A program made the position numbers and the translations under genes. From positions 156,178,001 through 156,242,000 of the forward strand of contig OZ038378.1 in the NCBI GenBank assembly GCA_964036045.1: a stretch of 64,000 nt of DNA, in the 5' to 3' direction. Positions 3,001 to 62,629 of the stretch are shown here, one piece after another. The DNA is from Eutreptiella sp. 'Long Island Sound 2002'. Taxonomy: Eukaryota; Protista; Euglenida. How positions within the stretch are numbered: the first letter of the stretch is position 1; every line of letters begins with the position of its first letter. The notes under the pieces are model-generated. The model was not told the DNA's origin. It ran no database searches and worked only from the letters and a program-made list of their open reading frames with translations.

Positions 3001-3346
3001 GCCGGAGGTGCGGAGGTACAGCACGACGTCCTGTTCCCCGAGTCCCCGGAGGTGCTGCCGTACCGCTGCGGGGTTGTGTAGGGCGTAGGGTTCGGCCGGT
3101 GCGGCGACTGGTGGTGCGGGGTGTGATGGGGGGGGTGGTGTGGGTTGGGGGGGGTGGTCGTCGTTGTCGCGCGTGAGTCCGGTGATGGGGTCTCTTGTGG
3201 CGGTCGCGGGAGGGGGGATTCGCGGTGGCGTCTGTCGGCGAGGGTACTGACGTCAATTGGCTGGTGCTGGCTGCCGCGTGTTGTGTCCGTGGCCTGGTCT
3301 CGGGGGGGGGGCGGGGGGGGATGGTGCGGGGGTGGCGCTGTTGGTG

Positions 3347-4082: not shown

Positions 4083-5414
4083 GGGCGCTCCTACTAGGCC
4101 CTGGTGTTGCTGGTGTGCGTGCGCGGCTCCTCGCGGGTCCATGGGGGTGTACCGTGGCTCGTATGTCGTGGGCCCGTGTAGCGGGGGCGGCGGGTGGTGC
4201 TGGACCGCGTGGTGGTGGTGTGGAGGGTGTGCCGGTTGTGTGTGGTACCCCGGCGTTGGTGGGTGTGGTGGCAGGGGCTGGTGGTGGTGGAACACGTGAT
4301 GCTGTGGTGCGGTGATGTGCGCTATGTGGGGTGGGTGGTTCGCGGGGCCTGGTTGTGCTGGGGCGTGGTGGGGATGTAGCTGGTGGGGGTCGCTGTAGCT
4401 TGGGGGCATTAGGGGGTAGGGGCTGGGAGGGACGGGGGCGCGGTGGTGGTGTTGGTGGTGCCATGTCCCCTGGCTCTGCGCGTACGGTGGTCCTGGCATG
4501 GTGTGGACGTGTGTGGGCGGTGGTGGCTGACTGGGCTGCAGGGTTTGGGTGCTGCGGTACGGTGGTGGTGGTGGGCGTTGGTGGTGGTGGTGTTGTTGGT
4601 GTGCCCCGGGGGTCTGCGCGTGGGGCGGTGCGGTGTAGCTGGACCCGGGCCTTGGTCGGGGCGTCGCGCCCTGCTGGCGGGCGCGTTGGCGCGCCCCCTG
4701 GTGCCGGTGCCCCTTGGTCTTCTTGGCCTGGTGGGTGTCGGGGGCGGGTGAACCCCCCTGTCCCTGTGGGGGCGACGGGGAGCGGGCGCGCCAGCGGTGT
4801 GCCTCTTGGAGGCTCGTCTTGAGGCCTCTGACGTAGCCCTCCTGGTCCGTGAGGCCCATCCGCGTGGCGGTGGCCTCGTCGGGGGCGGCCAGGTGGGCGT
4901 CCCGAAAAGACGCCCAGCCCTCCGGGGGCGTCTGTTGTGCGGGGTGGGGGTGGTGTGCCGGGTAGAGGAGTGCGCTGAGGGGGTAGGGTGTTCCCTTCCG
5001 TCGGCCGAGGGCGTTTGCGAACCGGCGGCACGTGGTTCGGAGGTAGGCTGCTATCTCCTCTGGTGCCGTGTCGGCCCACGCTTCCGGCGTCAGGGCTGCT
5101 GCTTGGGGGGCCGGGGGTTGTGGGTGTGGGAGGTGTAGGTCTCGTTGGTGGAGGTATAGGGCGAGGAGGATGTGGCGGGCCGCCACGTTCAAGCCGCCTC
5201 CGCTGTGGCGTAGGGGTGGGCTGTGGGGGGGCAGGGGTGTGTTGCCCGCGGCCACGGTTATGGCCCATGCGTGGTCCGCCGCGTCCGCCACGTAGTACCC
5301 TCCCAGTTGGTCCCGGAGAGTGTCGGTGAGGTACCCGAAAAAGCTGGGGTGGCTGGCGGGGGGGGGTGCGGCTGGGGCTGCGGGCCGTTCGCGGTGGCGG
5401 GGGTTGAGGTCCCC

Positions 5415-5522
5415 GCAGTGGGGGCAGTGGGTGAGGCGGTGCGCGGCTCCCAGGCAGACCCAGTGGTCTGGGTTGCAGGGCAGGGCTGTCTGTGGTAGCC
5501 GCTGGCGAACGCAGAGGGGACA
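5415..5522 (-). other. RING-finger-like Zn motif (degenerate)
   Basis: Manual translation upstream of and in frame with ORF 2676-5291 gives CPLCVRQRLPQTALPCNPDHWVCLGAAHRLTHCPHC = C-x2-C-x11-C-x3-H-x2-C-x2-A-x6-C-x2-C. The sixth ligand is A rather than C. Confidence 0.5.
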
Positions 5523-5992
5523 TGCGGTGGCTGGTGGTTGGTGGTACCTGTGGACGGACGGCGGCGTGGGGGGATGGGGGCTGGTGGCGCGCGCATGCTG
5601 GTGGGAGCGTGTGCGGTGCCTGTGGCGCCCGTGTGTGCTGTGCCAGTGCTGTGCTCGGTGGACGGTGTGTAGACGTGGTGGGGGTTCGGTGTTGGTACGT
5701 CACGGGGTAGGTTCTCATGGTTGGTAGAACAGGAGTTTGAGGAGGGGGGATTGGTCTGTTGGGGGCAGGGTCGCCGCATGCTGCAGGTATTTGTGGGTGC
5801 GGTATGTGAGCTGCTCCGCCGTCTTGGCAACGGCCGTCCGCTGCATGTGCGCCGCCGTGGCCTGGGGGTCATCCGCGTGGGTGCGTAGTAAGGTGTAGAC
5901 GGCAGTGGGGACGAGTCCCCTCCGGACTGCCTCGAGCACCTCCGTCTGCTTGAGGACGGTGGTGAGTTGCTGGGTCGCCGGGGACTGCGCCA

Positions 5993-7630
5993 GCCATTTC
6001 CTATTGAGCGCAATTCTGCTTGGCCCAGAAACATGACATTTCCCATTGGGCGCATTTTGCGTCGCCGGGAAAAATGCCATGTCCTATTGCGCGCAAATCT
6101 GCTTGGCCCAGAAACATGCCATATCCTATTGTGCACTATTCTGCTTGGCCAAGAAACATGCCATTTCCTATTGTGCGAATTTTGCTTGGCCCCGAAACAT
6201 GCCATGTGCTATTGGGCGCAATTTTGCTTGGCCCAAAAACGTGCCATTTTCTCTTCTGGGCAATTGTGCGTGGCCCAAAAACATGCTATTTCCTATTTTG
6301 CACAATTCTGCTTGGCCCCAAAAAAATGCCATTTTCTTTTCTGCGCAAGTCTGCTTTGCCCAAAAGCATGCCTTTTTTTTTTCTGCGCAATGCTTCTTGG
6401 CCAACAAACATACCATTTTTTATTGTGCGCAATTGTGCTTGGCCCAGAAATATGCCATTTCTTATTGTGCGAATTCTGCTTGGCCCAGAAACATGCCATG
6501 TCCTATTGTGCGCCAATCTGCTTGGCCCAGAAACATGCCATGTCTTATGGTGCACCATTTTGCTTGGTCGACAAACATGCCATGTCCTATTGTGCACAAT
6601 TCTGCTTGGCCCAAAAACATGCCATTTGCCTATCGTGCGCAAGTCTGCTTGGCCCGGAAACATGCCATTTCCTCTTGTGCGAATTCTGCTGGGCCCAGAA
6701 ACATGCCATTTCCTATTGTGCGCAATTCCGCTTGGCCCGGAAACATGCTATTTCCTATTGTACACTATTCTGCTTGGCCCGGCAGCATGCCATTTCTTAT
6801 TGTGCACAATTGTGCTTGGCCCAGAAACATGCCATGTCCTATTGTGCGCAAATCCGCCTGGCCGAGAAAAATGCCATGTCTTATTGTGCGCAAATCTTCT
6901 TGGCCCAGAAACATGCCATGTCCTATTGTGCGCAAATCCGCTTGGCGCGGAAACATGCCACATCCTATTGTGAATTCACCTTGGCCCGAAACTTGCCATT
7001 TCCTATTGAGCGCAATTCTGCTTGGCCCAGAAACATGCCATTTCCTATTGGGCGCATTTTGCGTTGCCGGGAAAAATGCCATGTCCTATTGCGCGCAAAT
7101 CTGCTTGGCTCAGAAACATGCCATATCCTATTGTGCACTATTCTGCTTGGCCAAGAAACATGCCATTTCCTATTGTACTCTATTCTGCTTGGCCCAGAAC
7201 AATGCCATGTCCTATTGTGCGAATTTTGCTTGGCCCAGAAACATGCCATGTGCTATTGGGCGCAATTTTGCCTGGCCCAAGAACGTGCCATTTTCTCTTG
7301 TGGGCAATTGTGCGTGGCCCAGAAACATGCTATTTCCTATTTTGCACAATTCTGCTTGGCCCCAAAAAATGCCATTTTCTTTTCTGCGCAAGTCTGCTTT
7401 GCCCAAAAACATGCCTTTTTTTTTTCTGCGCAATGCTTCTTGGCCAACAAACATACCATTTTTTATTGTGCGCAATTGTGCTTGGCCCAGAAATATGCCA
7501 TTTCTTATTGTGCGGAATTCTGCTTCGCCCGGAAACATGGCATTTCCCATTCTGCGCAATTCTGCTTGGCCCATAAATATGCCATTTCCTACTGTACATT
7601 CTGCTTGGCCCAGAAACATGCCATTTTCTT
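5993..7630. repeat. 42-bp minisatellite (~39 units) with ~1002-bp higher-order duplication
   Basis: Consensus ATTGTGCGCAATTCTGCTTGGCCCAGAAACATGCCATTTCCT; cctattg recurs at 6712 and 6754. The variant block starting ~5996 recurs at ~6998. Confidence 0.95.
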
Positions 7631-28945: not shown

Positions 28946-30651
28946 GTTGAAACCAACAGACGAGGCGAGGGATAAGGCAAAGCAAGGGACTCGTTCTGAA
29001 AATTCATTTGCAAACAACTATTCTGAGTGCCAAGACCAAACCGGCTGTAAGATTGTTGAAATGAAGCAGGCCCTCTTCAGCATTTGGCTATTTGAAACAT
29101 CAATATTGCAGAATACAAATGGCCTAAAAGTCAGTAAAAGAACACAAACTAAAGCAGGATGCAAATGAAAAAACAAATTGCTATTCTACAGCATTGAGTA
29201 TGTGTTTGGCCAGTTGTTTGTTTTTGAATGCATTCTAGACTCACGCACTAGAACGTGCACAAATTAACATGTTGTCCTGCACTTTGGCTTACCAACCTCT
29301 TTGTATCCCATGATGTTCTATCTGCTATGAAGCGCGTGCATAGTGTATGTCTAGCATGACCCATGTGGTGCCTCCTACTTTGTGGGCGCATTGTGCCTAC
29401 GCCATGGAAGAGGTTAACGTATTCCCCTTTGTCAATAATTCCCCCTCTTCAAAGTGATTGCAAACAAAAATTGCTCACTAATTGTCCACAGTCCCCTCTA
29501 TTGCCCCACTTACCATTGTGCCCCATGGGGCACTTGCATGGCATGTATGGCCCTCTGCCGTTCTACTCTACTTGACTTGCCTTGACTTGACTTCTTGTCG
29601 GTATGTAGTGGGATAGCAGTAGCCTTCAGGTAATAGTTAACGACCAGCAAAAAAACACACACTACTACAAAGGGTGAATGTAGCCTGATGAGTGCAGGCA
29701 TGTTTGCACTAGGCAGAGTGTGGCCCAGCAAACTTCTGTCAATTGCTTAACACACTGCATTTGCCAAACTTGTGCAAAGCAGGTGCTAGCGCCTTAGATA
29801 TTGTTGCAAGGTTGCAAACCATGTGCACTGCTGCAGGGGTGTGCTCCTCTGGTCCAATGCACAAGCATCCTGGCTGGTCCGGTAAAGAACCTCCGGGTTT
29901 TCTAACATTGGATACCATAATTAACCCCCCACCCCCCGGCGCATTTGGGATCACCCTCAAAACTTCACTGCCTGGAAATGACTCGGTGCGAAATCTGTTG
30001 GTGCTGGCAAAGAAGCTGATGACACGGGTGAAAAATGTAAGTCGTGTACAAAAAAGCCGTATAGTCGTGTAATTTTTTTTTTTTGCTGTAAATGCGTGTA
30101 ATTTTTTTTTTTTGCTGTAAGTCGTGTGAATTATAAAAAAAAATTGAATTTTTTTTTTTTGCTGTAAGTCGTGTAATTTTTTTTTTTTTGCTGTAAGTCG
30201 TGTAAATTATAAAAAAAATTGAAAAATTGAAAGAAATCCAACCTTTGCAATACATGCGCAATATGTACAGCTGCCGGTTCCGTACGGCACCCCATAGCGA
30301 CCTTAACGATGGGACGCCGAGTCCACAAAGCACATAGTACTCCGCGTGGCCACCAATTAGTTGGGACTCGGCCAATATAACATAGTTTCACATGTTGTCA
30401 TTGGCACTAGACTCAAAATCAGGCCCAAGAGAAGATTCCTGACAGGGCCATGGCCAACATCCAGTGTGCCTGCACTGGGAACAAAATCAGGCTCAAGAAA
30501 AAGAGTCCCGACAGGGCCATGGCCAACGCTACTGCCACCATTATAGGCCACCAAGGCACTGGCATGGGGCCAATATTATAGCAATCTTATACGCTCCACC
30601 ATTGGTACACCAAACGGCGGAGGAAAATACAACCCACAAAACATGCACCCG

Positions 30652-31700
30652 CTACAAGTAGTTGCAGAATGCACGCTTGTAGATCAAGTCCGTTTTTGTG
30701 TCACCGGACTTGGGCTTTGCACCAGGATTGGCGTTAAGCTGACAAGCGGCGCGCAACTCTGGAACTATCTGCTTGCACAGGCCATCAATGAAAAGCTGGT
30801 CACGCTCCAGCTGGCCAGATGCATCTGCTGGGTAGCCATCCGGCACCTTGCGCCACTCTCCACGGATGAGGACCTTGGGACGGGTGTCCTCCTCCTCGGT
30901 GGGAGTGTCCACGGAAGGTTGCGGCCTGGCCTCCGGGCTTTCCACGCTCTGCTCGGCGGAGGCCTCCTTGCCTTCGAGTGGGGTGGGGGTGGCCTGAACA
31001 CTGTCCTCCTTAGCCGAAAGTGCACCTTCAACTTGGGTGCTGGGGGGGGACTCAGGAGGGCCAGCAAGCTCGATCACGCCCTCCACATCATCACCGGGCG
31101 CTTGAGCGACCCGCACAGCACGATCAGCGTTAACAATGTTGAGCACGTAGTCCACAAAACCGGCACCCATTGGGACAAGGGGCACATTGGAAAAAGTACC
31201 CCGGTGCTCCACCACCTGCTTTGCGATGTTCAAGCTTTGAAAACCACAAGACCAACCGTCCGTTTGGAATCCCAAGGCGCGGTGCTTGGTGGTTCGCGAA
31301 AGCTTCTTCAAGGCCGACAAGAAAGGACGGATCAAATGAGTGGAGCTTAGGGGTTCCCAAACCCAAATAGTGAAAAGCTCCAACCGGACACGACAATCGA
31401 AGGCACACACAAACCAGTGCAACCCTTCCTTGTCATTGGAATTAACCACAAAAATGTGGCGGCGGCACCACCTCATGTTGGTCATTCTTTCGCCGGATTC
31501 AACTCTCTGCATGTACTTGGAGAGTCTCTTGATATATATAACCGCAAGAGTCCACGCACGTGGTTCATCGATTTCATTGTGGCAGACCTCTTGGTTCAAC
31601 CAACACAGGATATCCTTGTCGGTCAACCAATCTCCCACCCCCAAAGGGGTTGTTTCGCTCGGAATGGTGCTCCGAGTACGCCTTTGGGGATTGGGAGGGT
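30652..31700 (-). CDS. Ulp1/SENP (C48)-like cysteine protease with C-terminal SAP-like motif; N-terminus replaced by the 85-bp array
   Basis: WLTDKDI; IFVVN...GLHWF (His); WVWEPL (acidic position); FQTDGWSCG (Gln, Cys). The C-terminal LCKQIVPELRAAC...GDTKTDLIYK resembles SAP/HeH. Confidence 0.75.
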
Positions 31701-31708
31701 CGATAGGG

Positions 31709-32780
31709 GGAGCGGGGGGCAGAATCAGAATTGGCCCACAAGTGGGCAAATTGGCTACCTCACCCCTGCCGTATCGGGGAGCCCCACCGCTGCAGAGCGG
31801 GGGGCAGAATCAGAAGTGGCCCACAAGTGGGCAAATTGGCTACCTCACCCCTGCCGTATCGGGGAGCCCCACCGCTGCAGAGCGGGGGGCAGAATCAGAA
31901 GTGGCCCACAAGTGGGCAAATTGGCTACCTCACCCCTGCCGTATCGGGGAGCCCCACCGCTGCAGAGCGGGGGGCAGAATCAGAAGTGGCCCACAAGTGG
32001 GCAAATTGGCTACCTCACCCCTGCCGTATCGGGGAGCCCCACCGCTGCAGAGCGGGGGGCAGAATCAGAAGTGGCCCACAAGTGGGCAAATTGGCTACCT
32101 CACCCCTGCCGTATCGGGGAGCCCCACCGCTGCAGAGCGGGGGGTAGAATCAGAAGTGGCCCACAAGTGGGCAAATTGGCTACCTCACCCCTGCCGTATC
32201 GGGGAGCCCCACCGCTGCAGAGCGGGGGGCAGAATCAGAAGTGGCCCACAAGTGGGCAAATTGGCTACCTCAGCCCTGCCGTATCGGGGAGCCCCACCGC
32301 TGCAGAGCGGGGGGCAGAATCAGAAGTGGCCCACAAGTGGGCAAATTGGCTACCTCACCCCTGCCGTATCGGGGAGCCCCACCGCTGCAGAGCGGGGGGC
32401 AGAATCAGAAGTGGCCCACAAGTGGGCAAATTGGCTACCTCACCCCTGCCGTATCGGGGAGCCCCACCGCTGCAGAGCGGGGGGCAGAATCAGAAGTGGC
32501 CCACAAGTGGGCAAATTGGCTACCTCACCCCTGCCGTATCGGGGAGCCCCACCGCTGCAGAGCGGGGGGCAGAATCAGAAGTGGCCCACAAGTGGGCAAA
32601 TTGGCTACCTCACCCCTGCCGTATCGGGGAGCCCCACCGCTGCAGAGCGGGGGGCAAAATCAGAATTGGCCCACAAGTGGGCAAATTGGCTACCTCACCC
32701 CTGCCGTATCGGGGAGCCCCACCGCTGCAGAGCGGGGGGCATAATCAGAAGTGGCCCACAAGTGGGCAAATTGGCTACAT
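31709..32780. repeat. 85-bp tandem array (~12.6 highly homogeneous copies)
   Basis: Unit GAGCGGGGGGCAGAATCAGAAGTGGCCCACAAGTGGGCAAATTGGCTACCTCACCCCTGCCGTATCGGGGAGCCCCACCGCTGCA with few substitutions. Confidence 0.97.
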
Positions 32781-33044
32781 AACCCCTGACGCTTTTTTTT
32801 GCTTTTTTTTTCTGCTGTAAATGCGTGTAACAAAAAACCGTCAGGTGGTGTAATTTTTTTTTTTTGCTGTAAGTCGTGTAATTTTTTTTTTTTTGCTGTA
32901 AGTCGTGTAATTTTTTTTTTTTCGCTGTAAATGCGTGTAACAAAAAAACCGTCAGGTCGTGTAATTTTTTTTTTTTCGCTGTAAGTCGTGTAATTTTTTT
33001 TTTTTCGCTGTAAATGCGTGTAACAAAAAAACCGTCAGGTGGTG

Positions 33045-45151: not shown

Positions 45152-47420
45152 TGCTATCATCAGCTTGATTCTTCGAGCTATGGCATTGACAGAACTTGCG
45201 TTTTTGTCACGACAGAATGAGCGGGTTCTCAGTTTTCTGTGCTACTTTTTTTCTTTCTCAATGCAGGGTGTGTTGGCAGGTGTGCATTGATAGAACTTTA
45301 CACGATTTCAACTGCAAACAGTGATGCTCGTTTTTCAGAAAGAATTATATAAATGCTCTTTTTTATGGCAAGATCCGGAAAAAAGTAGGGCAAATGTATT
45401 TGACACCAGTTGCAAACAGTGATGTTGTTTCTGGAGGAGAAAATTTGTAATGGTGTTGTGATGGCAGGGTCTCGCAAAAGCAGGGCAAATGTTTTGGACA
45501 CCAAAGCTCCAAAGTTGGGCATTAGGAATCATGGTGGAAATCCAGCTTGCCATTTCCTTAGGCGGTTGGCATGGATCTCTACCATAGGTTCCTAAGAAAT
45601 AGATTCCTTCTACAGTAGTCCGACCTGTTGTGCCATGGGCAAACCCAGGCCGCAAGTGGTGTCGTCAACGAATGTGTCCAGGCCCTGGATGACCACACCA
45701 CCAACCTCCGACAGGCCGCTACGGCCCGCGGACACCTTCAGGCCGCTGGTTTAGCCTTGGAGCCGACGGTTGCCCAGGTCAAGGCCACCCTGCAGGCTCA
45801 CTAGGAGGGCCTTGCAAAGGCGGTGGGTAAATTTGAGGTCCGGCCCACCATGCTGGAAGCCAGGGTGGATAGCCCGGACACCGCCCTAGGAAGTCTGCGC
45901 AGCCGAGGGGAGCTGTTTTGCTGGCCCTGCTCTGCACTGCCCTGTACCCTGAACACTGGCACTGACACATGCAAAGCCAATATCCAACACTGCAACACTC
46001 CACTGACTGGTATTTGCGTCTGGGTTTTTGCGTCTGGGGCGTTCTGGCCCATGATGTGGGCGATACATATGCTTGCGCCTGTCGCTTGGCGCCACAGTAG
46101 ACGTGGGCCTCTGGTGAGGCTCAGGCAGGTTAGAAATGAATGTAGGTGTGTGAGAAGGCAGCAGGTGGGTAGCATGTACCTCAGGCACTGACACTGTCTA
46201 TGTCACTGTACCCGTCACTGTCATTGCTACTTCTCCTGCCCCCCCCCCCCCTCACCCGGCAAAACAAAAGTTGCTGTGCACAACTTGTGTTTTTCTGGCC
46301 CTGCTCTGCACTGCCCTGTACCCTGAACACTGGCACTGACACATCCAAAGCCAATATCCAACACTGCAACACTCCACTGACTGGTATTTGCGTCCGGGAA
46401 AAAAATGATTATATGTGCTTGTGGAAGCCGCCGGTATGTGGGAGTCGCCGGCAGTGGAGGCATCTATCTGATACACCCAATGCATCGTGTCTGTCGCAAC
46501 CCGGGTGCTTGGTAGCTGTGGCACAAGCATGGCACCCTGCAACACAGCGCCCTTAATCAGGTGTGTGCCGGCCGGAACTGGGACGAGGGTAACCAACACG
46601 CGAAGCACGCAGACAGAAGGTGCAAGGACAGTGGGCCCGGCCGCTGCGGCACACGTCCACGGCGCCGGGCACTCTGAAACATAGTGCCCTGAACCAGGCG
46701 CGTGCCGGTCCAAACCGAAACGAGGGTAGCAGGCACGCAAAGCATGCAATCCGAAAGCGTACGAACAGTGGGCCCGGCCGCTGCGGCTCACGTCGACGCC
46801 GCCGGGCACTCCGTGTCCGAATCGGTGGTGAGGCAGCCCTCAGGCCCCACGCAGGGTGCGAACACTGCAGCCACGCGCCACACCATAGCGGGCCGTCCCT
46901 GCACCCACAGATACGGAAGGGCCTGTCCGCCGTCTCGGTGGTGTGTGCTCCGGGAGAGGTAGACAGGCCCTTCCGCCACCAGTAGGCACCACCTGTGCCT
47001 ACTATGGTGCCGTCCTGCTCCCTTTATATCCCTACTGCCGGTGGTCGTAACGCCTTGGTCCGGGACAATGTGCAAGCGGTCACCGATGTCCCACACAGCG
47101 GCGCGCAACACTTCCGGCGCTCCACTGTCCTCAAACGGCACGGCAAACACCAACCTCGCTGCTCAGCCCAGAAATACGCGCCGCAAAGCGCGACCTAGCA
47201 CACGATGAGCACGCACAGCACGGAGGCGCGCCTCGGCGCGCACCGCGCGGCACGCCGCCACCTGCACAGATCGGCGGTGCCGGCGGCCATCGCCACTGCC
47301 TCACTTCTTGCGCCCTCATGATCGCGAACGCGTCATAAAAAACCAAAGCAATTGACTACGACAGATGAACGGGTCTCTGAAAATCCAGTTACTATACACC
47401 GCCCGCCTGCCCTCGCGCCT

Positions 47421-48900
47421 TTATTGCCGCCAATGCCTGGGTTGCCACCCGTACGAGCCACACATAAGTGCTTGCTTCCTGTCTCTGTCAGCTATGCTAT
47501 CCCACGGTGCAGCGGGTGCGCAGTTGAAAAACACTGCCTCCCTGGTCCTGGCCTGCACGACAATCTCTTTGGCCGACCGTCCACTGAACCAGCGGGAAAT
47601 CGGGTCTGCTAGGTTCAGTGGGGAGGGCACGTAGTGCAACTGCAGTGCCCCCCCTTCCACCGTAGGCTATGTGCCATTCGCCTCATGATGCGTTGCTGCT
47701 CCGGTAGCGCTATACCAGCCGTGCCCCAGAGTGAGGTGCTCAGTGCTCCTGTGTTATCCACAAACAGGTTTGCTGGTGCTTTAGCCCCTCGACTCCCGTG
47801 AGGACTCCCCACAGCTGATTTAACTGCTGCGAGATTACCCAGCACGGGCAACGTCTAGTCCAGGGTCCTGCTTGGTCCCACATGCCTACACAGTACCTTC
47901 CTGGCCCTTGCGCGGCGTCCACAAATAGGTGGGGTGTGTGTGAATGTGTGCTGGGTGCAGGCAGGCACCCATCCACGGAGCGCGCAGCACAGACCCTCCA
48001 AAATGCCCCTGACAAGGTTCGGTGGTGCCCTCGGTGTCCCGCGCGGCCCAAAATGCAGCCAGGCCCGTGCCCCACTCCAGAATGCGGCCGCTGTGTCTCC
48101 GGGGCGTCCGAGCCAGACCAAGCGGCCCAAGAGCCTCCTGAGGGATACTCGTGTCACCGGCGCTACCGCCAAGCGGATCCATGTAGTTACGCAATCTGCC
48201 ACCGCCACTGGTTTGGGCTAGATTCTGCCTGTGTGCGCATTCACTGTCTTACCCATCCACGTGACTTCCGCCACAGGGGTAAGGATACTCTTAGCCCCAA
48301 TCAGGCCACCCGCCTCACGCAGCGCGTCTGTCACATCATGTGTCACCCTGTGGACCTCCTGCTTCTGCTTCCCACCTACCAGGATGTCATCCAGGTACTG
48401 CACCACCAGTCCACCACCAGTGGGTCGACATGGGCAGTCACTGTCGCGATGAGGCGTTGCTTGCAGCCAGCCCATTCGAAGCACGGGTCCGCCCATTGCT
48501 CCCACAGGGTTGGTGGCACTTGCACGGAGCCCGCGCTCCCCGGACCCTTAGCAGCCAGCTGCACTGACACTTTGCGGCCCTCACCCAACACCGGTGTACT
48601 GGCGTCCTCTGGTGGTCCATTTACCGCCAATTCATGCAGGACCTCATGCAGCACTTGTAGGTCCGCTTTCTTGACTTCTGGCGCCAGCGGCATGTCCCAG
48701 ATCCAGAGTAGAGCCGTGTGCCACCGGAGGCGTAGCAGGTCCATAACTCCGCGTTCGTGCTCTCGGATCCGGGACGAGATTTTACCTTCTGCTGCCCGCA
48801 TGTGTGCTAGCAGTGCGTCTCGGAACTTGCCGCACGCTATGGGCTCCCCCGGCGGGCTCATCTGTGGCTGTGGATCCTCGACCGACTGCTGCCCCTGGTA
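47421..48900 (-). pseudogene. DIRS-class reverse transcriptase and RNase H
   Basis: VVQYLDDILVGG and VTWMG (48218-48505); LRRLLGRLVW; RNase H LFVDAA, SQQ..LWGV, LFVDNTGA, HYVPSPLNLADPISRW. Confidence 0.88.
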
Positions 48901-49160: not shown

Positions 49161-49955
49161 TCACCACCCATGACTGCCATTGGCCAATTTTCCATTTGCG
49201 CGCACTGTGGCTCCACCTGCGGGCGCTGGCCAGGGGAGCAGGGCAGGGAGTTCCGCCTCCGAGTTGATTGGGGGCGTGGTGTATTCTGCCGCTTGGCGTT
49301 CGGACTTCCACCTTCCCCATCGGGCCGTGGCTGCCATGGTTGCCCCCGTGGCAGCCAGTGCCGCTGCCCCAAACCTGCGGAAGGCGTGCCAGGCCACTAA
49401 GTGCCACACTGTGGCCATGAGTGCGACTCGTAGGGCGTGCTGGAGTTGAGTGGTCGAGGCGAACAGTGGGATCCAACCCGGCCTGTGCCCAACAATGGCG
49501 TGTAGGCGTTTTCTCCACGCCTCGCCCCAGTGGCTGAGTCGTGCCGTGCTCCACCTGTGTTGGGTCTTCTGGTCATAGAAGGCCACGCTCCAGGGTGTCG
49601 CCACGTCTGTTGGTTGTACTGAGGCGGCCTCACAGACGCGCCATCAAAGGGCGCTCCCCAAACATGCCAGCGCGACGACTGCTGTGCCATACGGCCCCGA
49701 GGTACGTGCGTCCAGGGTTTGCAGGCAGTGCGCATTGCCCCACATTCTCCGCGCTGGTGGACGTGCGTAGGCCCGGTCTGCTGCCTTGCATATGGCCCAG
49801 TGGAATGAGGTAACCACTGTGTCGACGATGCCCAGGGTTTCACACATTCTGACGCTGGATACAACACCTCTGAGTGTAGCACACTGTCGCCCTTGTGCTG
49901 CCAGCATGGTGAGGAGCTTGGCCAGTGCCGAGGGGGCGTCATGCTCCGCGTACAT
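49161..49955 (-). pseudogene. Tyrosine recombinase
   Basis: FYDQK (Lys), WHAFRRFGA (H-x-x-R) and ARWGRWKS....EY (W...Y) in 49161-49604; N-terminal helical part in 49644-49955. Confidence 0.88.
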
Positions 49956-50126
49956 GAGCGCACGTCCTGCCGACCCGCTGCAAGTCGCGGCGCCAGTTTT
50001 GTCTGGTGCCTTCTGCCCAGGCTATGTTTGCCAGTGCACCCGGTTCTGTCGCCACGTCCTCTGCTGTGAGTGCGTCCAGGGAGGTGGCCATACAGCGCGG
50101 CTAGATTGCTGTGCCGTCCTTTGCAC

Positions 50127-51340
50127 CTAGGTCGTCCCTTGTTGCTCCCGGCTCTCCCGCTGCGCTTGCGCTACTGCTGGGGTGGGATTGGGGCTGTGGT
50201 TGGGGTTTGGGTTGTGGTGGCATGCCTGCCTGTTGTGCGGGGCACGGCCGCCATCTCCAGTGGTTGCCTTGGCATCTGCTGCAGGGGTAAGGCGGGGGCC
50301 CGGACGCATCATACTGTCGCTCCGTTGTGTGCACCGTGTAAATGGTCTGGGCCCCCACCTGAGTGAACCCCCCCGTACGGGGGGGCGGAGGCTGAGGCCA
50401 CTGATGCCGGGGCTGTGCGGGCCTGTGGCACATTTGTGGCCTGCGGCCACTGCGCGGTCTGTGCTTGCGGTCGTGAGATGTTGTGGGATGGGGGCCGCTG
50501 TCGCACAGTCTCTAGACCAGTGCCCGCACATTCCGCACCTGAAGCATGCCCCCGGTGGGCCACGTGCGTGCGCGCCATTTGCTGGAGCGGTACCTGGGGG
50601 GCCGCCTGGAAAACGGGGAAGGCCTGCTGGTGGGCCATAAGTGCTGTTGGTGCTATTGGTACGGGCCGCGGGGCCGGCTGTGGCGCTCGTGTGGTCACCG
50701 TCAGGGACAGGGTTGTCCATACCGCCGCGCGTAGTACTTCTCCCGCTTTGGCCACATCTTCGGGTCCCGCCATTGGTGTCGTCCCATATGCCTGCAGTGC
50801 CGGCACCAAATCTCTTTCCATCCCGGCCTGCATCGCCTTGTCGCTGACGGCCTTGACCTGCTCCTCCGAACACAGGGGGATCTTAGGCATTCGGAGCTTT
50901 GCAACCTGGGCTTCCAGGTCTGCAATTTCGTTTTGTACGGGGTCCACCCCTGGCACTGTTTGTGGTTGTTCTTGCGGCAGCCCTTGCGGCGGTTTCGGCG
51001 CCTCGACCCATTTCCCCTGCAGTAGGTGCACCTTGTATGGCTTGGCCTTCTCATACGCTGCCAACGCCAGCAGCACTTCGTGATTCGGCTTGTGTGGTGC
51101 CGCCCAGTGCACCATCTCCCGCACTCCCGCTTCAATGAGCCCTTGGCGCGTTGCCCTGTCTCGGTACCCAAGCTGCCTTGGCCTCCGGCGCGAGGAAGGC
51201 CGTGGCGATCGGCGCGAGGAAGGCCGTGGCGATCGGCGGGCATGTCTCGAACCACACTTTCCACTGCGCATACAGGGGGTCGAGCCCCGCTGCCTCAAAG
51301 TCCATTGGGGCCCTCGAACGCCCAGCGGGGTTGCATGCTG
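50127..51340 (-). pseudogene. Gag-like region with CCHC zinc knuckle
   Basis: CFRCGMCGHWSRDC (C-x2-C-x4-H-x4-C) at 50505-50546; the upstream helical region is in another frame (50309-51298). Confidence 0.8.
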
Positions 51341-51372
51341 CTAGATGAACCATCTCCGCCCGCTTCTGGCAT

Positions 51373-51600
51373 GCCTCCTCCGGCGCGCCCAAAGAGATGC
51401 AGCGTGCACTTCTCTGGCACGCCGTAGTCCTCCAGGGTGACATCACCTCTAGTTAACTTTTTCCCCGCGTACATGAGCCGTTGATGTTCCGTGGCGATGC
51501 CCTCCCGTGCTGCTACTTGGTCCCGCACATGGTCCACCAGCGCGTGCTCCGTCCGCAGGTGGATCGCGATGGTTTTCAGTCCGATGTTGATGAAGATGCA
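51373..51600 (-). CDS. Ubiquitin-like domain (76 aa) within ORF1 of the YR element
   Basis: CIFINIGLKTIAIHLRTEHALVDHVRDQVAAREGIATEHQRLMYAGKKLTRGDVTLEDYGVPEKCTLHLFGRAGGG aligns by eye to ubiquitin (QIFV..KTI, EGI...QRL.FAGK.L, TL.DY, TLHL..R..GG). It is followed directly by Met. Confidence 0.88.
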
Positions 51601-54600
51601 GCAGTGCTCCTGTGCTTCCAGCCTTTCGCTGTCCCCTGCATCAGCTCGGTACTGTACTGCAGCTTTGTCGATGTCGCCTTCCGCCGCCTCGGTGCCCGCA
51701 TGTGCCCTTGTTCCCCGCATTGCCGGGGGACGAACTCGGGGTCATGTTGCCTGTTCTGATTTCCCACCCCGATAGGTATCTCGATCTCCCCCACCCCACC
51801 TTCCGGGAGGCCTTGTGCTCCGCGGCTATTCAAGCCGCTGCGCTGAGTATCCCCCCAAATAGCGGGGCTGGGGCAGTCGAGGGCGCCATCCGTCGGTGGG
51901 TGGTCTGTGCCCGTGACGGCAGTATGGGGCACTCGACGTTCACTCCCCGCATCCGTCTCCTCGGCTCCCATGTAGTGCCTTGATACAGAGGGTCCGCTGA
52001 AGCGGGCCGTCTCGGACTCGCGGGCGTTCTCGTCCGTGCTCACTGTAGGCTCTCGTGCCCGCTACATATGTTTTAGCTCTTCGCCCCCGCGTCGTATGCT
52101 CCGGCTCGTTCTCAGTGGACGTCTTCGGACGCGGTGCAGCCTGCAGCGCCTCGTACGTCTTGGCAGCCTCGAGCGTCGCGGAGTCGTCCTGCGAGTCACG
52201 ATTGGGATCGGTGGCTCAAGGTCCCCCTCTCGCGGTGTGGAAGCTATCCCTTCAGCGATGTGTTCCGCGCCCACGCACCCCTCGTCCTGGCGCGCGTCCC
52301 GGGCGGCCGCTACGATGACGACCATGCTGGCGAGGCCTTCAAGGGGCAGCGTCTGGTACTGCAAGGCGGTGCCGCATTGTGTATACCCAGCCATACCCGG
52401 CTGTTGGCGAGTCAGCGTGGGGTTCACGGTGCTTTGCCCCAGCTCGCACCTGGCCTGTAACACGCCAATGACCGTGGCCGCCGTCGCCAGCAAGGCCCAC
52501 GTTCGTGCCACTTGCCGTTGTTTGTACCCTGAACGCCATGCCCCTTCATCAGCCATGATTCCCTCTGGTGAGGCTCAGGCAGGTTAGAAATACATCAAGC
52601 TGGGTGTGTGGAGCATGTACCTCAGGCAGTGACACTGTCACTGTCACTTAAGCCGTCACTGTCATAGCTACTTCTCCTGGACCCCCCCCCCTTACCCGGC
52701 AAAACAAAAGTTGCTATGCACAACTTGTGTTGAAACAAACCACAGCCGCACACAGGCATCACGTTCAGCAGAGCCTCTAGGAACATATGCGGGAGATTGC
52801 AGTTCAACATTATTATTTGCGCACCATCCGGGGCGTGCCGGACCGCCTGACAGATTTACACGCGCGCATCTACACCCTGGAGGGACCTGGTGCACGGGCC
52901 GGGGTAGCACCGGATCCTACTGCGGATTGCAACATCCGTCTGCAGTCCGTGGAACAGAAGGTAGCACAATTCGAGTGTGTACCGCAAGACGGGCACTCTG
53001 CCACGCTTCCTACAAGGGGTGGTACACTTCGAGAGGCAGACTGTCGTAGCCAGGCCACGGTAGAGCAATGTGTGCGTCAGCACTGCACAGTGTTCAATGA
53101 CAGATTCAAATCCCTCGAACAAGAGGTAACACGATGCGTGGCGTCGGTAGAGTTTGCCCAGGCCTCCTGGCAGGCCACGTCGGAGGTTACCCCCCCTCCG
53201 GACCCGACAGTTGGCAGAGGGTCTGTGCCCCTAGATCACCGGGTGTGCTAGTTGGACTCTCCGGTGACCGAAGCTCATCACGACCTGTGGCACCTACAGG
53301 CCACGGTGGGAGGAATGGTCCAATTGTCAAGGTCGTCAGGGGAATCCCCGGCAACACCGGCCCTGTGGAAGACCGAGAGTACCCGTGGATGCGGAAGCTC
53401 CTCTAGGGTCAGAGGTACCATCGGCGACCACTACTGCCGCCGCACAGCCCAGTACGTCGTATGACGTGCACGCCGCATAGTTGGACGCCAGAGAGACTCC
53501 ACCATCCTACGCTGCTACTTATCCCTCACCGCCCCCACCACCTAGGGAGGAGGGCCCCGAGAGGCAACCCATGCCCAACCCGCAGCTCCTCCGCGCCCGG
53601 GCGTAGAGTCGTGGGCGGGGGGTGATGGCCACCTAGGGCAGATTCGATTTTTCTGTCTGCGAGATTGGCTCAATGCCCAGGGAAAATTCGACCCCGTCGA
53701 CTTCCTTGAGTACCTTGAAAATGTCGGGGATGGCGAAGTGGGTGCATCCCTTAAGGTTAGACCATCCTGGGGTCCCTGACAATGGAAGAGCGTTCGAGGA
53801 AGTGTTGATGAATGACATTGCGTCGAGGCCCAATGATACGAGCTCAGCGACGGCCCCCGGACGCCTGTTGGTGGGGCTTTTAGGCCCACAGCTCGCGGTG
53901 TTATTGGACCCCAACCAATTGAAGGCCACCCAGGCCAACACCCACCGTCCGTCCTCTGATGCTGAAGGGGCCACCGCCCGCGACTATTGGCAAGGCTGGC
54001 TGCTTTACGAAAAAAAACACAAACCATCTGCAGCAAGAGCACCTCCAAAAAGAGGCCCTGCTACAAAGCTTGCCCGCCTCAAGACAAAATGTCCTCGGGA
54101 AACGATGCGCCCGCCGCTTCACCGATTACCATAAGCCGAAAGCCGTGGTCAAAACGCAAGTAGACTGGGCATTGGCAAAATACGGCGCCTCCAAAAGCTG
54201 GCAGGACATTGCACCGCCGCACCTGCCACGGCCAACTCGCTCACTGAGTGAGTCAATGATTGGTGCCAGGCGGGCGCGCGCGTGCATGGTGGAGTGAGTC
54301 ACCACGGGGCCAGGAGGAAGTTCCTCAAGGCTCTGTATATGTCCAATGCCTACCAAGGGGATCTGGATGCAATGGTTTTGGTGGAGGCCAAGCAGAACGG
54401 CAAGTTCTCCTATCTGGAGGCCTTCTGCTTTATTTTGACGCAACTTGTCGGTAAAAAACGAGCCAAGGTGATTAAGCAAACCATTGTCGGAGAGGCGCGT
54501 GCGGTCATTGCTATGTAGCAACATGGCCGGGGCCGGCCCCGCGGACATGGCAAAAGGAAAAGGCGGTGTTGACAGCGGGTCACCAAACGTAGCAGCAGCG

Positions 54601-57008: not shown

Positions 57009-60000
57009 CTTCAATTGGTCGGTAGGCTGAGCTGGATGTCCCCGCCATAGACACTTCCAGCCATTGTTCTTCAGCAAGTTCACAGCAGTGCGTCCGGGTT
57101 TTTGCTAGGCGACTGTCCCGGTGCTTCCGCCAGTGTTCGCTTGTCCCTACCTTCCATATGTACACTGTCGTACCCAAGTTTGCGGGGCTTTGACTCTACA
57201 GGGTCAGTGGCGTGCATGGTGGTCAGGGTCAGTCCCTGGGATACCTGCTTGACGCTGGCCCCATTCGGCCGGTACTCCTGGGATCTTGGTTCGGGCTCAC
57301 TGTGCCCTGGTGGTGCTGGTTAGCGCACATTCAACACACAGCCATTCAGGGCCTCAAATGGTCAGGTTGCAGTGTCCGCATTTGGCTCTGCCATTCAGGG
57401 GGGGGGGGGGGGTTGCTTGGGTGGGTTTGTTGCGCTGATGGTGCCCATGTGGGGCACTGGGTTTATGGAGTGGTGCAGTGAGAACACATGGTGCTGCAGG
57501 ACAGTGTGGAGGCGTCGTCAGACATGCGTGACGCTGGCGATGTGTGCCTTGATGAGGTGTGGGAGGACGGCATGCTTTCGGTGTCTGCCTGGCTTGGTCC
57601 CTGCTCCCAGTCCATTTCAACCAGCTGCAGTTCTGCCAACAGATTTGCTGCTACACGTGGCGACATGGGTGATGGTGGTTGGGGGGTGTGAAATGTAGTT
57701 CTGCGTTCCAGCGCCTCCCACGGTGTGTGCATGCAGTGCACTGTGCTCGGTGTGGCCAATGAGGTGTGAGGGAGGCGGGCTCGGAGGTTGGAGAGTGGCG
57801 TGTAGGCGACGGTGTGTGGTGTGAATCTCTTCGGGTATTTGGGGTTCCTGGCCGGGGTGCAATCTTCAATGTCCTGTGACGGTGTCGGTCGGCGAGGGGT
57901 TCTGGGGGGGGGTGGGGGGGTGCTGTACTCTTCCGCTGTGTGCCGCAGTGGTGTGAGCTGCGACTCTGGGAGGGGGGGCTCGTCAAGCTCTGGGGCCTCT
58001 TCCTCCAGTAGGTCCGCTAAGGATTGTACATCATCATTGTCTGGTGGCTGTTGTTGCCCTGTTTGCGAGACGGAGACGTGTCCAAAAAGGAGGGGGGATT
58101 TTCGCCGACCGACATCCGCCAGATGATCCGCTCTGGTATTGCCTTTGATTCCTATGTGGGAGGGGATGTGCATCCAGTGGGTGGGGGAGTGTGCTGATTC
58201 AATTAGGTCCAGTACCTGGGTCCACAGGTCCACGTGGCTGACCGGGCCCGCGGATCCTGTCCACTTGTGCCTGCGCCACTTTTGGGCCTTGCCGTGGACA
58301 CCGTCTACAACGAGTAAGGAGTCAGGGCAGATCAGGACAGGTTTGTCTGGTGACCGTGCTTGCAGCGCGCGCAGGGCTGCCCTCAGTTCCCCTCTGTTGT
58401 TGGTTTGGGGTTCACTCACTGGAATTGGTTCGGCTGTATCCCTGGAATCCCCAAAGGAGACGCCATACCCTCCCACTCGTCCTACTACCTCATGGTCCTC
58501 CGATGATCCGTCGGGATATATGACTTCCCACCCTGCTTCGACATACCGCTGGATTATTTGTTCATAGTACTCACAGAGTTCTTGTTTGTGTGTTTCTTTT
58601 CTCCGTTTCTTGCGTGCCGGGGCTACCAGTGTGGGGGGGGGGAGGGAGGAGTTGTGTGCTGTGTGGACCCTCGGGTGCTGGATCGTGAGCGTGTTCGGAT
58701 CACTCAGAGAATCGAGTGCCTGCAAGAACAACTGTGTTTCTGATTTGGGGAAGGAGGGGAAGGGGTGGTCCACCCAATCGCTGAGGTTGGCTCTCCACTG
58801 TTTCAGAAACTGTTGCCACGGGGGTTGGAAGGTTGGGTGATGAAATTTGCATCTGCTGCGGACCATCCAGTTTGCCCTGACCGCAGACCAGTAGAGCAGC
58901 CCTAGGGGGGATGAGACAGAGAGTGCAGGTTGATCCCATAAGATTGCTTCTGGGTCTGCTGTGGAGCCGTCCGCTAGCGCTGCAGGTCCCACACATTGTT
59001 GGGCAATGAAAAATGCAGGTTGCAGAAATTTACAGTGCAGGGTGGCATGCTTGATTGTTTCTTGAACCCCTGGGTGTAGTGGGCATGCAGTGCCATTTGG
59101 CTGCCAACTGGCCAGCCTGGTGCCCACCGTGAGTTTGTGCCAGAGCGCTAGTTGGATGAACTGGGTGTCTCTGGGAGGGAGACGCAACTTCGCCCATGCT
59201 TGCCAGGTTTCCGCCGTCTGTCTGGGCGGTTCAGGGGTCAAGGACATTAGGTAATGCAACATGTGCCGTTTGTTCCATTCTGACCAAAACATGGGGCTTG
59301 CTTCCTTTAATTTCGTGTGGGGCGCTGCTGCTTGGATTTCTGTTATGCACGCTTTGTAAACCGGCGCCCAAGTGGGGGGCAGGAGGGCAGAATACTCTGG
59401 GATTTCAAGTAGTTGTCCCAGGGTGGTGACACCTTTGCGTAGCAGGGAAGGGGAGTAGTAGGAGTTGGCTTTGGTGTCGCGGAATAATGCTGAGTGCCAT
59501 GCAGGCAATTTGACATACTGATCCAGAGTCGGGACTGGTACTGGTGCATGTTTGCGCAGGAGGGAAAATGCCTTGCACGAGGTGCCCAGAAAGGGATAAG
59601 TCTTCCACGGTATCGGCCCCAGCTGGAGCCAGGGCAGGTGTTGGAGGTTAAGTGAGATCCCCATTTGGCTGGTCCACTGTAAAAAATGGTTTCTAGACAG
59701 CTCCGGGACACTCAGAATTTCAGAGATTGCTTGAAAGAAAGGGGTGGCATGCTGCCACAGCAGATATATATGCGGTTGGGGCAGAAGTGCTCCCCCTTTG
59801 TTTCGGGGCAGCTGTAGTATGGGCAATGTGAGTCCCCAGCTGCTGATGTTGAGTGCCTGTTTGTAGATGCTGCTCAGCTGGGCAATAACTGAGGTGGTGG
59901 GGAAGTATGCGCGCGCCGGGTAGATCAATAGAGGGAGCACCCACTCTTGGAGCAGGGCTACCCTCTCGTCCAGCGTGAGGGGTAGGGCCTTCATAAACTG

Positions 60001-60545
60001 TGCTCGTTTGAGTGCGCGTGCAAGCAGGGGGGCGTAGGCTTCCTCCGGTGTGACATGCCCAATCAAATTGCCCAGGTATTTGGTTTTTTGCTTCACAGGG
60101 ATCCCATGCGTCTGTAGCTGTGCAATGGAGTCATCAGACCAGGGACCTTTCAAGAGCAGAGCTGATTTTTCCAAGTTCAAGGTCAGCCCCACAAAAATTC
60201 CGTAGCTGTTCAGGACTGCTAAGATGCGTGGGAGGAGACGAAGCACCAGGGGGGGGGGGACTGGGAGGTACAGCAGGAGGTCATCAGCATAAAACAGGAC
60301 CTTGATGTGTGGTGAGACTGATTGAATGACTTTGATTAAAACTGAAGTTACCATTACAAACAGTGCTGGGGACAGCGGATCCCCTTGGCGGACTCCTGAC
60401 TGGGGAATTACTTCTACTCCCTGTACAATTCCCTTTCCGACAACAAACAAGAAGGGGGAGCGTAGGAGGGACATGATCAGGGATATGAGGGGAAGAGGGA
60501 TGCCTACAAACAGGAAGTAGGCAATGAAGTAGTTATGATGGACTG
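57009..60545 (-). mobile_element. Young 5'-truncated LINE with 17-bp TSD, no poly(A) tail
   Basis: AGGAGTGTGTGTGTGGG at 56992-57008 and 60546-60562; both flanks belong to the same G-rich aaatttt(g)ggcggg repeat. Truncated inside RT (.SVHHNY). Confidence 0.92.
57463..60545 (-). CDS. LINE ORF2 remainder: RT - Zn finger - RNase H (uninterrupted, ~1027 codons)
   Basis: SGVRQGDPLSP, FYADD (60280-60291), KYLG, CPLHPGVQETIKHATLHC (~59033-59096). RNase H with YPDGS, QTNNRGEL, CPDS, DLW, HIPSHIGIKGNTRADHLA (~58105-58530). Confidence 0.95.
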
Positions 60546-62629
60546 AGGAGTGTGTGTGTGGGGGGGCGGGGGGGGGGGCAGCACGCGAGATCGGAAATTT
60601 TTGGCGGGTCGCGAGCGGAGGGGGGGCGGGCAATTTGACAATTTTCGGGCGGGCGGGGGCGTGCGATCTCAGAAATTCTGGGCTGAGGGGGGCGGCGGGG
60701 GCAGGGATTTGGGAAATTATGAGAAGGCGCAGAAGGTGCGCGCCCATTGCCGGGCCCCTACCCCAGTGGGATGGGGGTTTGTACTACCATTGTCGGCCCC
60801 CTACCCCAATGGGATGCGGGTTTGTACCTATCGCCAGATATGGCCGTCACCACGGAGAGGGGACTTGCATACCACTTTGAAGCATTGCATTTGTCAGAAA
60901 AATGCTTTATTATTAAACAGCAATTTGATTGCTATTTCCACTACGAAGATGAAAGCCCCCAACCCCAAGCGTATTTGCGCACGCGTGCCAGTGTAGCTTT
61001 AGCACCCACATTCGATGAATAGTATGATCAAAAGGAGATAGATGAGATCTTTATAGAGGATTGATCCCAGGTGATTGTGTTTGTCAGTGTGTGTTTGCAG
61101 ATATGAATAGTACAAAGTGCAGGCATATTGACACGGGGGGCTGGGAGGCCAGCCCAAGCATGGTCCCCCTTGCCCCCCTCCCCCCCCCACAGAGGCGCGC
61201 CAAAAGGCTGACATATGGATATTGATACATATGGGAATATGGATAATGTGGCATGTGCGTTGCGTGTGGCCAACGGATGCCACATGGTGCGTGGCCGTGT
61301 TGCCTCCCATCTGCTCCTTGGGCATCGCTAGCCGGAACAAACGGATTGTGATTTGGATGATGCGTGCCTGGTTCATGTTTGCCCGGGTCGTGCATATTGC
61401 AATGCAAACCACACATAGTCTGTGCAAACGCGCAGTCATCTGGCATGGTTGCATGGTTACTCCTCTTTGTCTCAAGCTGCCGCAAGGAACGGCTCAAACA
61501 TAGACCACTTCGTTTGTGATTTGACCCCCCCCCACCCCAAGGCCGCTGCCGCCGCCCCGAGCAGGGGCCAAAAGGTTGACACCCCCCATCCGTGCTACTT
61601 TTGCACGTCAGCGCTCCAATGCATATTGATGAACATGAAGTGTAACCTAGCCCAGCAATATAGGCATGGAGAGCGATTAAGACGCGAAGTGTTCAACCTT
61701 GTATCTTGGGTCTTGGACCATGCTCCTGACTCATTTGTTGCTATTGCATCGAGAGATATGCAAGTGCTCTGGCCGTTTGAGAAGCTTTGTGTTTGCCTGC
61801 AAAACGTCGTGGATGTAGCTGTGATGGGGCTCGGGACCAAGAAAGGGGGCAGACTCCCCGTTCCCGATACCATTCACCATACCCAGCACCACCCACAAAC
61901 AACCAATAATGCCAAATATGTGCATGGCCACATAGGGGCATGCACCTACGGCTTCAAGGCCATTGGTAAAGGTGCGTGAAGTTAAGTGAGAGAGAACACA
62001 CACACACACACACAAGCATAGTGCAAAGGTGCATTGGGCTTTGTGACGAAGTATTTTTGTCATTTCAGCATTTTCCATCGTGTTTTCAAATTTGCAACAC
62101 GCAAAAATGCCTTTTGGAAGGCGAAAATGGCCTGAAGACGGACACTTGTGGGCTGCCCAGTGCATGCACATACACAACACCACACCAGCTAATGCTTCAA
62201 GTCCCGAAACACGCGTGTGCACAATTTGAGCACATGATCGTTCATGTTATGTTCTTTTGTTTCATTGCCTTGTGTTGGGTGCACGTGTTGTAACCATATT
62301 GCACGCATGCCGCCCAAAAGGCATGTTTTTTCTCCGTTTCCGGGGTATGGGGGGCTTAAAACTGTTTCCTTTCATACGTTTGATGAAGCACCACACACAA
62401 CAACATCAGAAAAATTGTATATGAAAGGCGCAAGAAGGTAATAATGGACCCCTAATGCTTCCCAAATGCATCCCTGTGTCCGTTGACTGTGACGGGTCAT
62501 GCAAAATTTCACATCAACTACTGCAGACCGGGGGTATCAAATATATTGTGGCACCAATATGGCGCGACATTCCCTGGGCATTCTTGCTCAACCCTACAAA
62601 ATGATGTACTTCACACAGCCTGTCCTACA

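Follow-up and report, generated by a model that had tools for sequence, protein, structure and literature searches.

A ubiquitin domain directly ahead of Gag in a putative tyrosine recombinase retrotransposon of VIPER-type layout from a probable euglenid

Layout of the element and its ubiquitin domain

The window, by which we mean the whole 64,000-nucleotide stretch of DNA analysed, carries on its minus strand a retrotransposon copy comprising, in order, A1, a leader, a ubiquitin (Ub) domain, Gag with a CCHC motif, a putative tyrosine recombinase (YR), reverse transcriptase (RT), RNase H (RH) and B1-A2-B2. The 5' split direct repeat, A1 (52562-52709), ends 5 nucleotides ahead of the ATG of the open reading frame. 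Its two parts, 52562-52606 and 52606-52709, match 46108-46152 and 46165-46268 at 87% and 82% identity, respectively, and within it, just 5' of the ATG, are in-frame TAA and TGA codons which are conserved among copies. The 3' split repeats (45914-46398, minus strand) consist of B1 (46288-46398), A2 (46108-46268) and B2 (45914-46024); B1 and B2 are 97% identical, while A1 and A2 are 82-87% identical. Two tandem 137-nucleotide units, 77% identical to each other, occupy 46531-46804, immediately ahead of B1 in the untranslated 3' region of the element. An Rfam search of the window revealed no RNA family.

The leader and linker together span 51601-52556 (minus strand), beginning with the ATG at 52556-52554 (MADEGAW...) and including an arginine-rich stretch at about 52077-52190 before the linker. 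The leader ORF starting at MADEGAW, which the first-pass annotation of this DNA had pointed out, does exist; it covers 52062-52556 and directly follows the A1 repeat. The Ub domain (51373-51600) is followed without a gap by a Met codon (51370-51372), which we propose to be both residue 1 of mature Gag and the P1' residue of a cleavage site, and then by the Gag-like region (50127-51369) with its CCHC zinc knuckle at 50502-50549. Ub thus lies between A1 and the CCHC motif inside the element, as had been claimed. The zf-CCHC match is weak in the window copy and reaches 23.7 bits, above the Pfam cut-off, in the sister copy P0003, in which the helical Gag domain was modelled by AlphaFold2 (AF2) with a pLDDT of 83-95.

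The domains downstream were located by tblastn with the ORFs of two other copies (L035 and L033). The YR region (49161-49963, minus strand) has box II to the Tyr (HAFRRFGA...GRWKSERQAAEY) at 49281-49388, and the catalytic motifs RVSEA, HAFRRxGA (HxxR), GRW and Y recur in both the Ub family and a Ub-less family. A language-model feature search matched this region to PF00589 clusters with a score of 0.97, and there was a weak match (E = 0.072) to a PHROG integrase; no Pfam match was found up to an E-value of 10, and none appeared in PDB sequence searches with a single sequence or a profile. The AF2 model of YR was unusable (pLDDT 38). The RT and RH region occupies 47424-48807 (minus strand), with YLDD in the ORF at 48218-48505. 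The RVT_1 match is weak in the window copy and has an E-value of 1e-13 in the sister copy L035, and the RH region is conserved between families; with the RT ORF as query, scores in the atlas feature search did not exceed 0.80 and were uninformative. By tblastn the order gag, YR, RT/RH was found in the window copy and in 12 other copies belonging to four families.

The window copy is dead, interrupted by a stop codon at 52062-52064 and by frame-breaking indels near 51816, 51306, 51172, 50565, 50470 and 50183, the first of these being a 1-nucleotide deletion in the leader, and its leader, Ub and Gag do not lie in a single frame.

In gene order and in the split direct repeats A1 and B1-A2-B2 the element matches the earlier description of it as a VIPER-like YR retrotransposon, at the level of layout. 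Kinetoplastid VIPER elements are arranged as A1, a Gag-like ORF (with CCHC in some), YR, RT/RH and B1-A2-B2, their coding part being made up of three separate, partly overlapping ORFs (PMC6681497), and VIPER has been described as known only from kinetoplastids (PMC3783388). Since the host is a probable euglenid, and therefore a member of the Euglenozoa like the kinetoplastids, a VIPER-like element is phylogenetically plausible here, and the VIPER-type architecture would be extended beyond kinetoplastids to a probable euglenid.

A 141-amino acid ORF at 51295-51720 (minus strand) contains ...CIFINIGLKTIAIHLRTEHALVDHVRDQVAAREGIATEHQRLMYAGKKLTRGDVTLEDYGVPEKCTLHLFGRAGGG|MPEAGG when translated, where the bar marks the end of Ub. 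The domain has a tail reading LHLFGRAGGG, the last two Gly codons of which are at 51378-51373. The first-pass annotation had recognised a ubiquitin-like domain ending in GG and followed by Met at 51373-51600; both coordinates and description are correct, and the Pfam ubiquitin family PF00240 matches with an E-value of 2.8e-12 and a score of 46.7 bits, where the cut-off is 25.4. The same model scores 35-56 bits elsewhere among the copies and families, above the curated threshold. Among PDB sequences ubiquitin proper came out on top in phmmer (E about 6e-10 for one unit), with an alignment reaching G76, and the matches include ubiquitin fusions of the polyubiquitin and ribosomal protein type. 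The AF2 model made for P0003, a natural protein, was based on aligned natural relatives. Its residues 148-217 form two strands, a helix, a strand, a short helix and a strand, i.e. a beta-grasp fold (pLDDT 64-80), and the top 50 Foldseek hits to this part are almost all ubiquitin, with TM scores of about 0.75-0.78 by target. In the order of the model, a disordered N-terminus precedes the beta-grasp, which is followed by a low-confidence linker (residues 220-236) beginning at GG and by the confident helical Gag domain.

The element Ub is 40-42% identical to host ubiquitin versus 31-35% to the host NEDD8-like gene. Position 72 is Ala in NEDD8 and Arg in ubiquitin; the equivalent of R72 is kept in the element, whose tail is G-R-x-x-G-G in all three Ub families described below, and the tail of the host NEDD8-like gene is ALRGG. 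The equivalents of K11, K48, K63 and G75-G76 are retained as well. At the positions of I44, H68 and V70 the element has M, H and L/F, and at that of L8 it has G or P (family 1); L71 is replaced by Gly and L73 by Val or Ala.

Copies, families and selection

The 426-nucleotide Ub ORF has at least 41 DNA matches at 74-87% identity in the 2.28-Gb genome, and with a protein query made of Ub and the Gag N-terminus, 105 of 150 scored candidates matched, these candidates being drawn from 941 first-look finds. The question of frame was addressed with naturally intact ORFs of single copies. Single ORFs cover leader, Ub and Gag in L007 (655-2565, 637 amino acids), L025 (930-2639, 570 amino acids) and L005 (1134-3173, 680 amino acids), which bears out the suggestion that leader, Ub and gag form one ORF. 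In L034 an 859-amino acid ORF runs over Ub, Gag and YR, and in L035 one of 652 amino acids runs over YR and RT; in L035 and L031 Ub-Gag is in the same frame as RT-RH. Because natural ORFs span Ub-Gag-YR and YR-RT, and because these frames are shared, active ancestors probably encoded one long polyprotein, and from these ORFs the elements seem to encode a giant leader-Ub-Gag-YR-RT-RH product. The separate ORF1 polyprotein that had been assumed gives way to this single frame (L034, L035, L074 and L075). The expectation that the element lacks a protease has stood: Pfam recognised no protease domain in element ORFs of 859, 652, 1950 and 1281 amino acids. Nor was the 2A motif NPGP present in any forward frame of 11 copies. 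With VIPER/TATE the element shares gene order, split repeats and the lack of a recognisable protease or integrase, a likeness at the level of layout; unlike VIPER, with its three ORFs and no ubiquitin, it appears to have one long frame with an N-terminal leader-Ub. The word ubiquitin is absent from the VIPER/TATE survey (PMC6681497).

The protein query also reached much more remote elements, matching them over both Ub and Gag, and two further Ub families were thereby discovered. Family 2 (L071 and L074-L077) has copies 95-98% identical to each other and open frames of up to 1971 (L071) and 1781 (L077) amino acids, and in L074 and L075 all domains lie in one frame. Family 3 comprises L072 and L073, in which Ub is about 50% identical to host ubiquitin. 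In both families the junction reads ...GRL(R/C)GG|(M/L)P... and Gag follows. All of the element ubiquitins carry two one-residue insertions that are absent from host ubiquitin and from the NEDD8-like gene, which argues for a common origin or for exchange between elements and not for repeated capture from a host gene. An RT tree with a midpoint root only splits into two clades, each with 100/100 support, one made up of families 2 and 3 and the other of family 1 and the Ub-less lineages. On that tree, the simpler history is that the Ub-less lineages lost leader-Ub at the GG|M junction; two gains of Ub in place of that loss would still be admissible.

Several copies related to family 2 have host-like sequence resembling LHC, the chlorophyll a/b-binding family (PF00504), in frame ahead of Ub. 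It was located at L078:2442-3306, L079:110-3274 and L071:2908-3207, and in the proteins P0060, P0070, P0080 and P0083. The LHC-like piece lies at a fixed distance of about 46 amino acids before Ub in P0060, P0070 and P0080 and at other distances in L071 and P0083. Additional pieces, LHC-like and resembling GAPDH and MACPF, are situated further upstream; in L078, those resembling GAPDH-N and MACPF are found between an A-type repeat and Ub. Capture of cDNA from abundant host mRNAs could account for the LHC-like pieces, as could an insertion preference for LHC genes. That the LHC domain of L071 is purely chance flanking sequence is an explanation weakened by the recurrence of LHC-like sequence ahead of Ub in other copies.

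Selection was assessed from pN/pS (Nei-Gojobori) in 25-30 natural copies of six subfamilies, projected onto the frame of L007, with between-subfamily pairs pooled. The first-pass annotation had left its reading hanging on whether Ub evolves neutrally, and it does not: in family 1, Ub has a pN/pS of 0.32 (0.23-0.43) versus 0.92 (0.86-0.98) for pseudo-codons of the 5'-UTR as a non-coding control, Gag has 0.20 (0.16-0.24) and the leader plus linker 0.80 (0.71-0.91), where the intervals are codon bootstraps and the pairs are non-independent, coming from decayed copies projected onto one copy's frame. Shifted-frame controls gave 0.8-2.1. In 25-codon windows the drop in pN/pS starts within Ub and continues unbroken into Gag, and within Ub the constraint is greatest over the C-terminal two thirds. 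In family 2 the leader has a pN/pS of 1.31 and Ub one of 0.51, while Gag, YR and RT-RH are at 0.38, 0.49 and 0.44, respectively.

These data bear on whether the domain is a one-off: a neutral capture of a host ubiquitin pseudogene, or a chance ORF. The dead, frameshifted window copy would by itself look like that. Against it stand dozens of copies in three families, with Ub in frame in natural ORFs, the contrast in pN/pS with the control, and the two shared indels missing from host ubiquitin. We consider this origin ruled out for practical purposes by the DNA copies (at least 41), the 105 protein matches and pN/pS; Ub is present in other copies, where its absence would have told against the first-pass reading. 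Ub is almost certainly an ancestral, selected part of the polyprotein and an integral module of a clade of YR retrotransposons that is VIPER-type by layout.

The leader behaves differently. Stops in the leader frame number 4-9 per 1000 codons versus 14-54 in other frames, and its ATG, right behind A1, is kept in 25 of 27 copies; given these facts and a pN/pS of 0.80, the leader would be translated yet almost free to vary. Leaders cannot be aligned between the more distant subfamilies, where DNA similarity begins just before Ub, and their length and content are wholly different between families. The amino acids of this open frame are hardly constrained, and that includes the two hydrophobic stretches reported for the leader in the first-pass annotation. 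The stretches are 11-15 residues long with a pN/pS of 0.75-0.96, and a role for them as membrane anchors is unsupported. Only the arginine-rich stretch RRTTPRRSRLPRRTRRCRLHRVRRRPLRTSRSIRR at 52077-52190 (minus strand) stands out within the leader by a lower pN/pS, of 0.50; it belongs to a long-leader variant seen in some subfamilies only.

The GG junction and the processing it may imply

The GG is kept in all 30 copies of family 1 and the Met that follows in 29 of them, a conservation that is partly due to shared descent. The tail G-R-x-x-G-G|(M/L)-P is common to three families that are about 30% identical to each other, and the residue after GG is not Pro, being Met in 29/30 family 1 copies and Met or Leu in families 2 and 3. 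In the AF2 model of P0003 two folded domains are joined by a disordered linker of low confidence, to which the residues after GG belong. When 1.8 billion cluster representatives were searched with Gag alone, 45 proteins were retrieved; those that could be traced were all from a single ENA assembly, which evidently belongs to the same species. The more distant Gag relatives among them (P0031-P0037, 30-36% identical) have CCHC and lack Ub, and their Gag begins where the Met or residues after GG align. The Ub-less locus L038 keeps the order gag-YR-RT-RH, and in none of the Ub-less loci L038, L062 and L063 was Ub found in any frame.

We favour, with a probability of about 0.6, the reading that Gag-Pol is released from leader-Ub by a cut which host deubiquitinases make after GG. 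The polyprotein would lack a protease of its own and consist of a variable leader, Ub ending in ...GRxxGG, Met-Pro..., Gag with CCHC, YR, RT and RNase H. The cut would be made by the host deubiquitinases that process natural ubiquitin fusion genes, while the chain is being translated or shortly thereafter; it would part Gag-Pol from a leader-Ub piece that evolves fast and can be discarded, and would define the N-terminus of Gag. The long 5' region could then be translated from any available upstream AUG with Gag unharmed. It is the presence of a selected Ub unit directly ahead of Gag that makes trimming of the element protein by host ubiquitin-cutting enzymes probable. The invariant GG, the non-Pro residue next to it, the flexible linker and a junction placed at the start of Gag fit the pattern expected of a deubiquitinase-cleaved fusion, as do constraint from Ub onward, an open but unconstrained frame upstream and the lack of a protease or 2A. 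Cleavage, enzyme and purpose are what we infer from an observed domain with its fold, frame, spread, selection and junction equivalence. The host UCH-type deubiquitinase gene is split by introns.

Several points weigh against cleavage. Sequencing runs on record that contain the sequence are DNA runs or of unknown type, with no RNA run among them. One GG site cannot account for the separation of Gag, YR and RT, if they are separated. With L8 changed, Gly for L71 and Val or Ala for L73, recognition by a given deubiquitinase is not guaranteed. Purifying selection on Ub is equally expected if the domain works uncleaved, and the principal alternative is indeed that Ub stays attached to Gag as an integral ubiquitin-like (UBL) domain, which could dock the polyprotein or particle to the proteasome, shuttle factors, ESCRT-type ubiquitin receptors or further host proteins that bind ubiquitin, or could help Gag to fold or assemble. 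The constrained C-terminal two thirds hold the equivalents of the I44 patch (QRLMYAGKQL and TLHL), a surface suited to receptor binding, and as the polyprotein has no other visible processing site it may work uncleaved. Integral UBLs, however, are usually without an RxxGG of the free-tail type, and none of the three families departs from GG; the place of the domain is precisely that at which Gag starts in Ub-less relatives, with a disordered linker behind it; and an unconstrained leader would be an odd neighbour for a permanent part of Gag. We therefore regard a permanently attached Ub as unlikely, though it deserves to be kept in mind.

Released leader-Ub might also be a functional product in its own right, a possibility compatible with cleavage. 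It would be a Ub variant with a hypervariable N-terminal extension, conjugated to targets or acting as a decoy or chain terminator, and would manipulate ubiquitin-dependent control of the element by the host. The residues retained in Ub (K11, K48, K63, R72 and G75-G76 equivalents) agree with such a role, and so does the fast evolution of the leader (pN/pS 0.8-1.3), since counter-defence proteins often evolve fast. A leader pN/pS near 1 is more simply explained by absence of constraint, however, the leaders differ completely between families and include fragments of host LHC, and Ub-less sister lineages manage without leader-Ub. We consider a function of this kind improbable.

Deubiquitinase cleavage after GG could be put to a wider use, which we propose only tentatively: leader-Ub may serve as a general in-frame adaptor, giving the element in the deubiquitinase system its only processing protease and at the same time a route to host ORFs. 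With everything translated ahead of GG removed at that site, any start further upstream would do for the element, those of captured or neighbouring host coding sequence included; the LHC-like fragments lying in frame before Ub in several copies are of this kind. The leader would thereby become an open slot for cargo and innovation, the products of which are released as X-ubiquitin proteins.

Among known systems, natural ubiquitin fusions (polyubiquitin, eL40 and eS31) have GG abutting the first residue of the partner, where deubiquitinases cut. They and the element alike encode Ub in frame directly ahead of another protein; the element differs in having a Ub about 40-50% identical to that of the host, a leader upstream and a transposon polyprotein as partner. 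In pestiviruses (BVDV), host ubiquitin captured into the polyprotein serves as a processing site for host enzymes. Those insertions are sporadic, recent captures in an RNA virus with proteases of its own, whereas the module described here is old, diverged and family-defining, in a retrotransposon without a protease.

In trypanosomes, the retrotransposons L1Tc and ingi carry N-terminal 2A recoding elements; in these and other non-LTR elements 2A is a short module near the N-terminus of a single long ORF (PMC3894237, PMC3708506). Like 2A, Ub would part upstream sequence from the working protein without an element-encoded protease, and trypanosomes, in which such 2A modules were first discovered, are also Euglenozoa, but L1Tc and ingi rely on ribosome skipping at NPG|P and the Ub element on proposed enzymatic cleavage after GG. 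By analogy, the N-terminal 2A of L1Tc/ingi would be the closest transposon precedent and natural ubiquitin fusion genes the closest biochemical one; Ub would, if cleaved as proposed, be the functional counterpart of the 2A peptides of trypanosome LINEs. Ginger, Helitron and MULE transposons carry ubiquitin or SUMO proteases, Ulp1 or OTU (PMC2836005). Both they and the present element tie transposition to the ubiquitin system, those by carrying the protease and this one by carrying the substrate.

This would be the first retrotransposon lineage known to us that carries ubiquitin itself and not a ubiquitin protease. The first-pass annotation had known of no description of a leader-Ub-gag architecture, and likewise no report of a ubiquitin domain in an ORF of DIRS, Ngaro, VIPER or any other retrotransposon was found in open-access full text, a scope to which Repbase does not belong; ubiquitin is not among the acquired domains that a 2026 preprint describes in Euglena retroelements. 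YR retrotransposons (DIRS, Ngaro and VIPER) are not known to encode a protease, and a selected Ub at the Gag N-terminus would, if the proposal is true, explain in concrete terms how one cut at least is made in the maturation of their proteins. The GG|M junction with its unconstrained upstream slot would also be a natural design for obtaining two proteins from one ORF in euglenids.

Other features of the host genome and the window

The host ubiquitin (L040) has S19, D24 and A57, as in plants and many protists. Head-to-tail ubiquitin arrays were located at G000:C15:29319398-29378821 (minus strand) and G000:C14:38300652-38333780. They contain open frames of up to 1701 amino acids (about 22 units), repeated over some 60 kb, which is far beyond the usual polyubiquitin gene. 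In addition, divergent stand-alone ubiquitin-like sequences ending in RGG or PGG (L052-L056) occur in the host genome at G000:C13:35633922, C22:23913431, C5:62057580, C15:12139637 and C4:49354292, some of them in long open frames, e.g. one of 1224 amino acids on C22. The 24-mer TTTCTGAGTGTCTATTTTTTTTCG, which we take to be the Euglena spliced leader, has 7,483 dispersed occurrences on both strands of the whole genome (e.g. G000:C1:29492-29515) versus 0 for the reversed control. This spliced leader, the plant/protist-type host ubiquitin and the plant-type L1 of the window rule out a vertebrate host, which the size of the genome had at first suggested, and we take the host to be a euglenid.

Elsewhere in the window, the two longest ORFs of 30643-32782 match no Pfam family at E-values up to 0.001. 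Nucleotides 1-6000 have a G+C content of 70-73% and a G-over-C skew of 0.34-0.37, unlike the rest of the window, and contain several overlapping long ORFs on the minus strand. An intact 1094-amino acid ORF of an L1-type LINE, of the plant type and with RVT_1, zf-RVT and RNase H domains, is present at 57463-60747 (minus strand).
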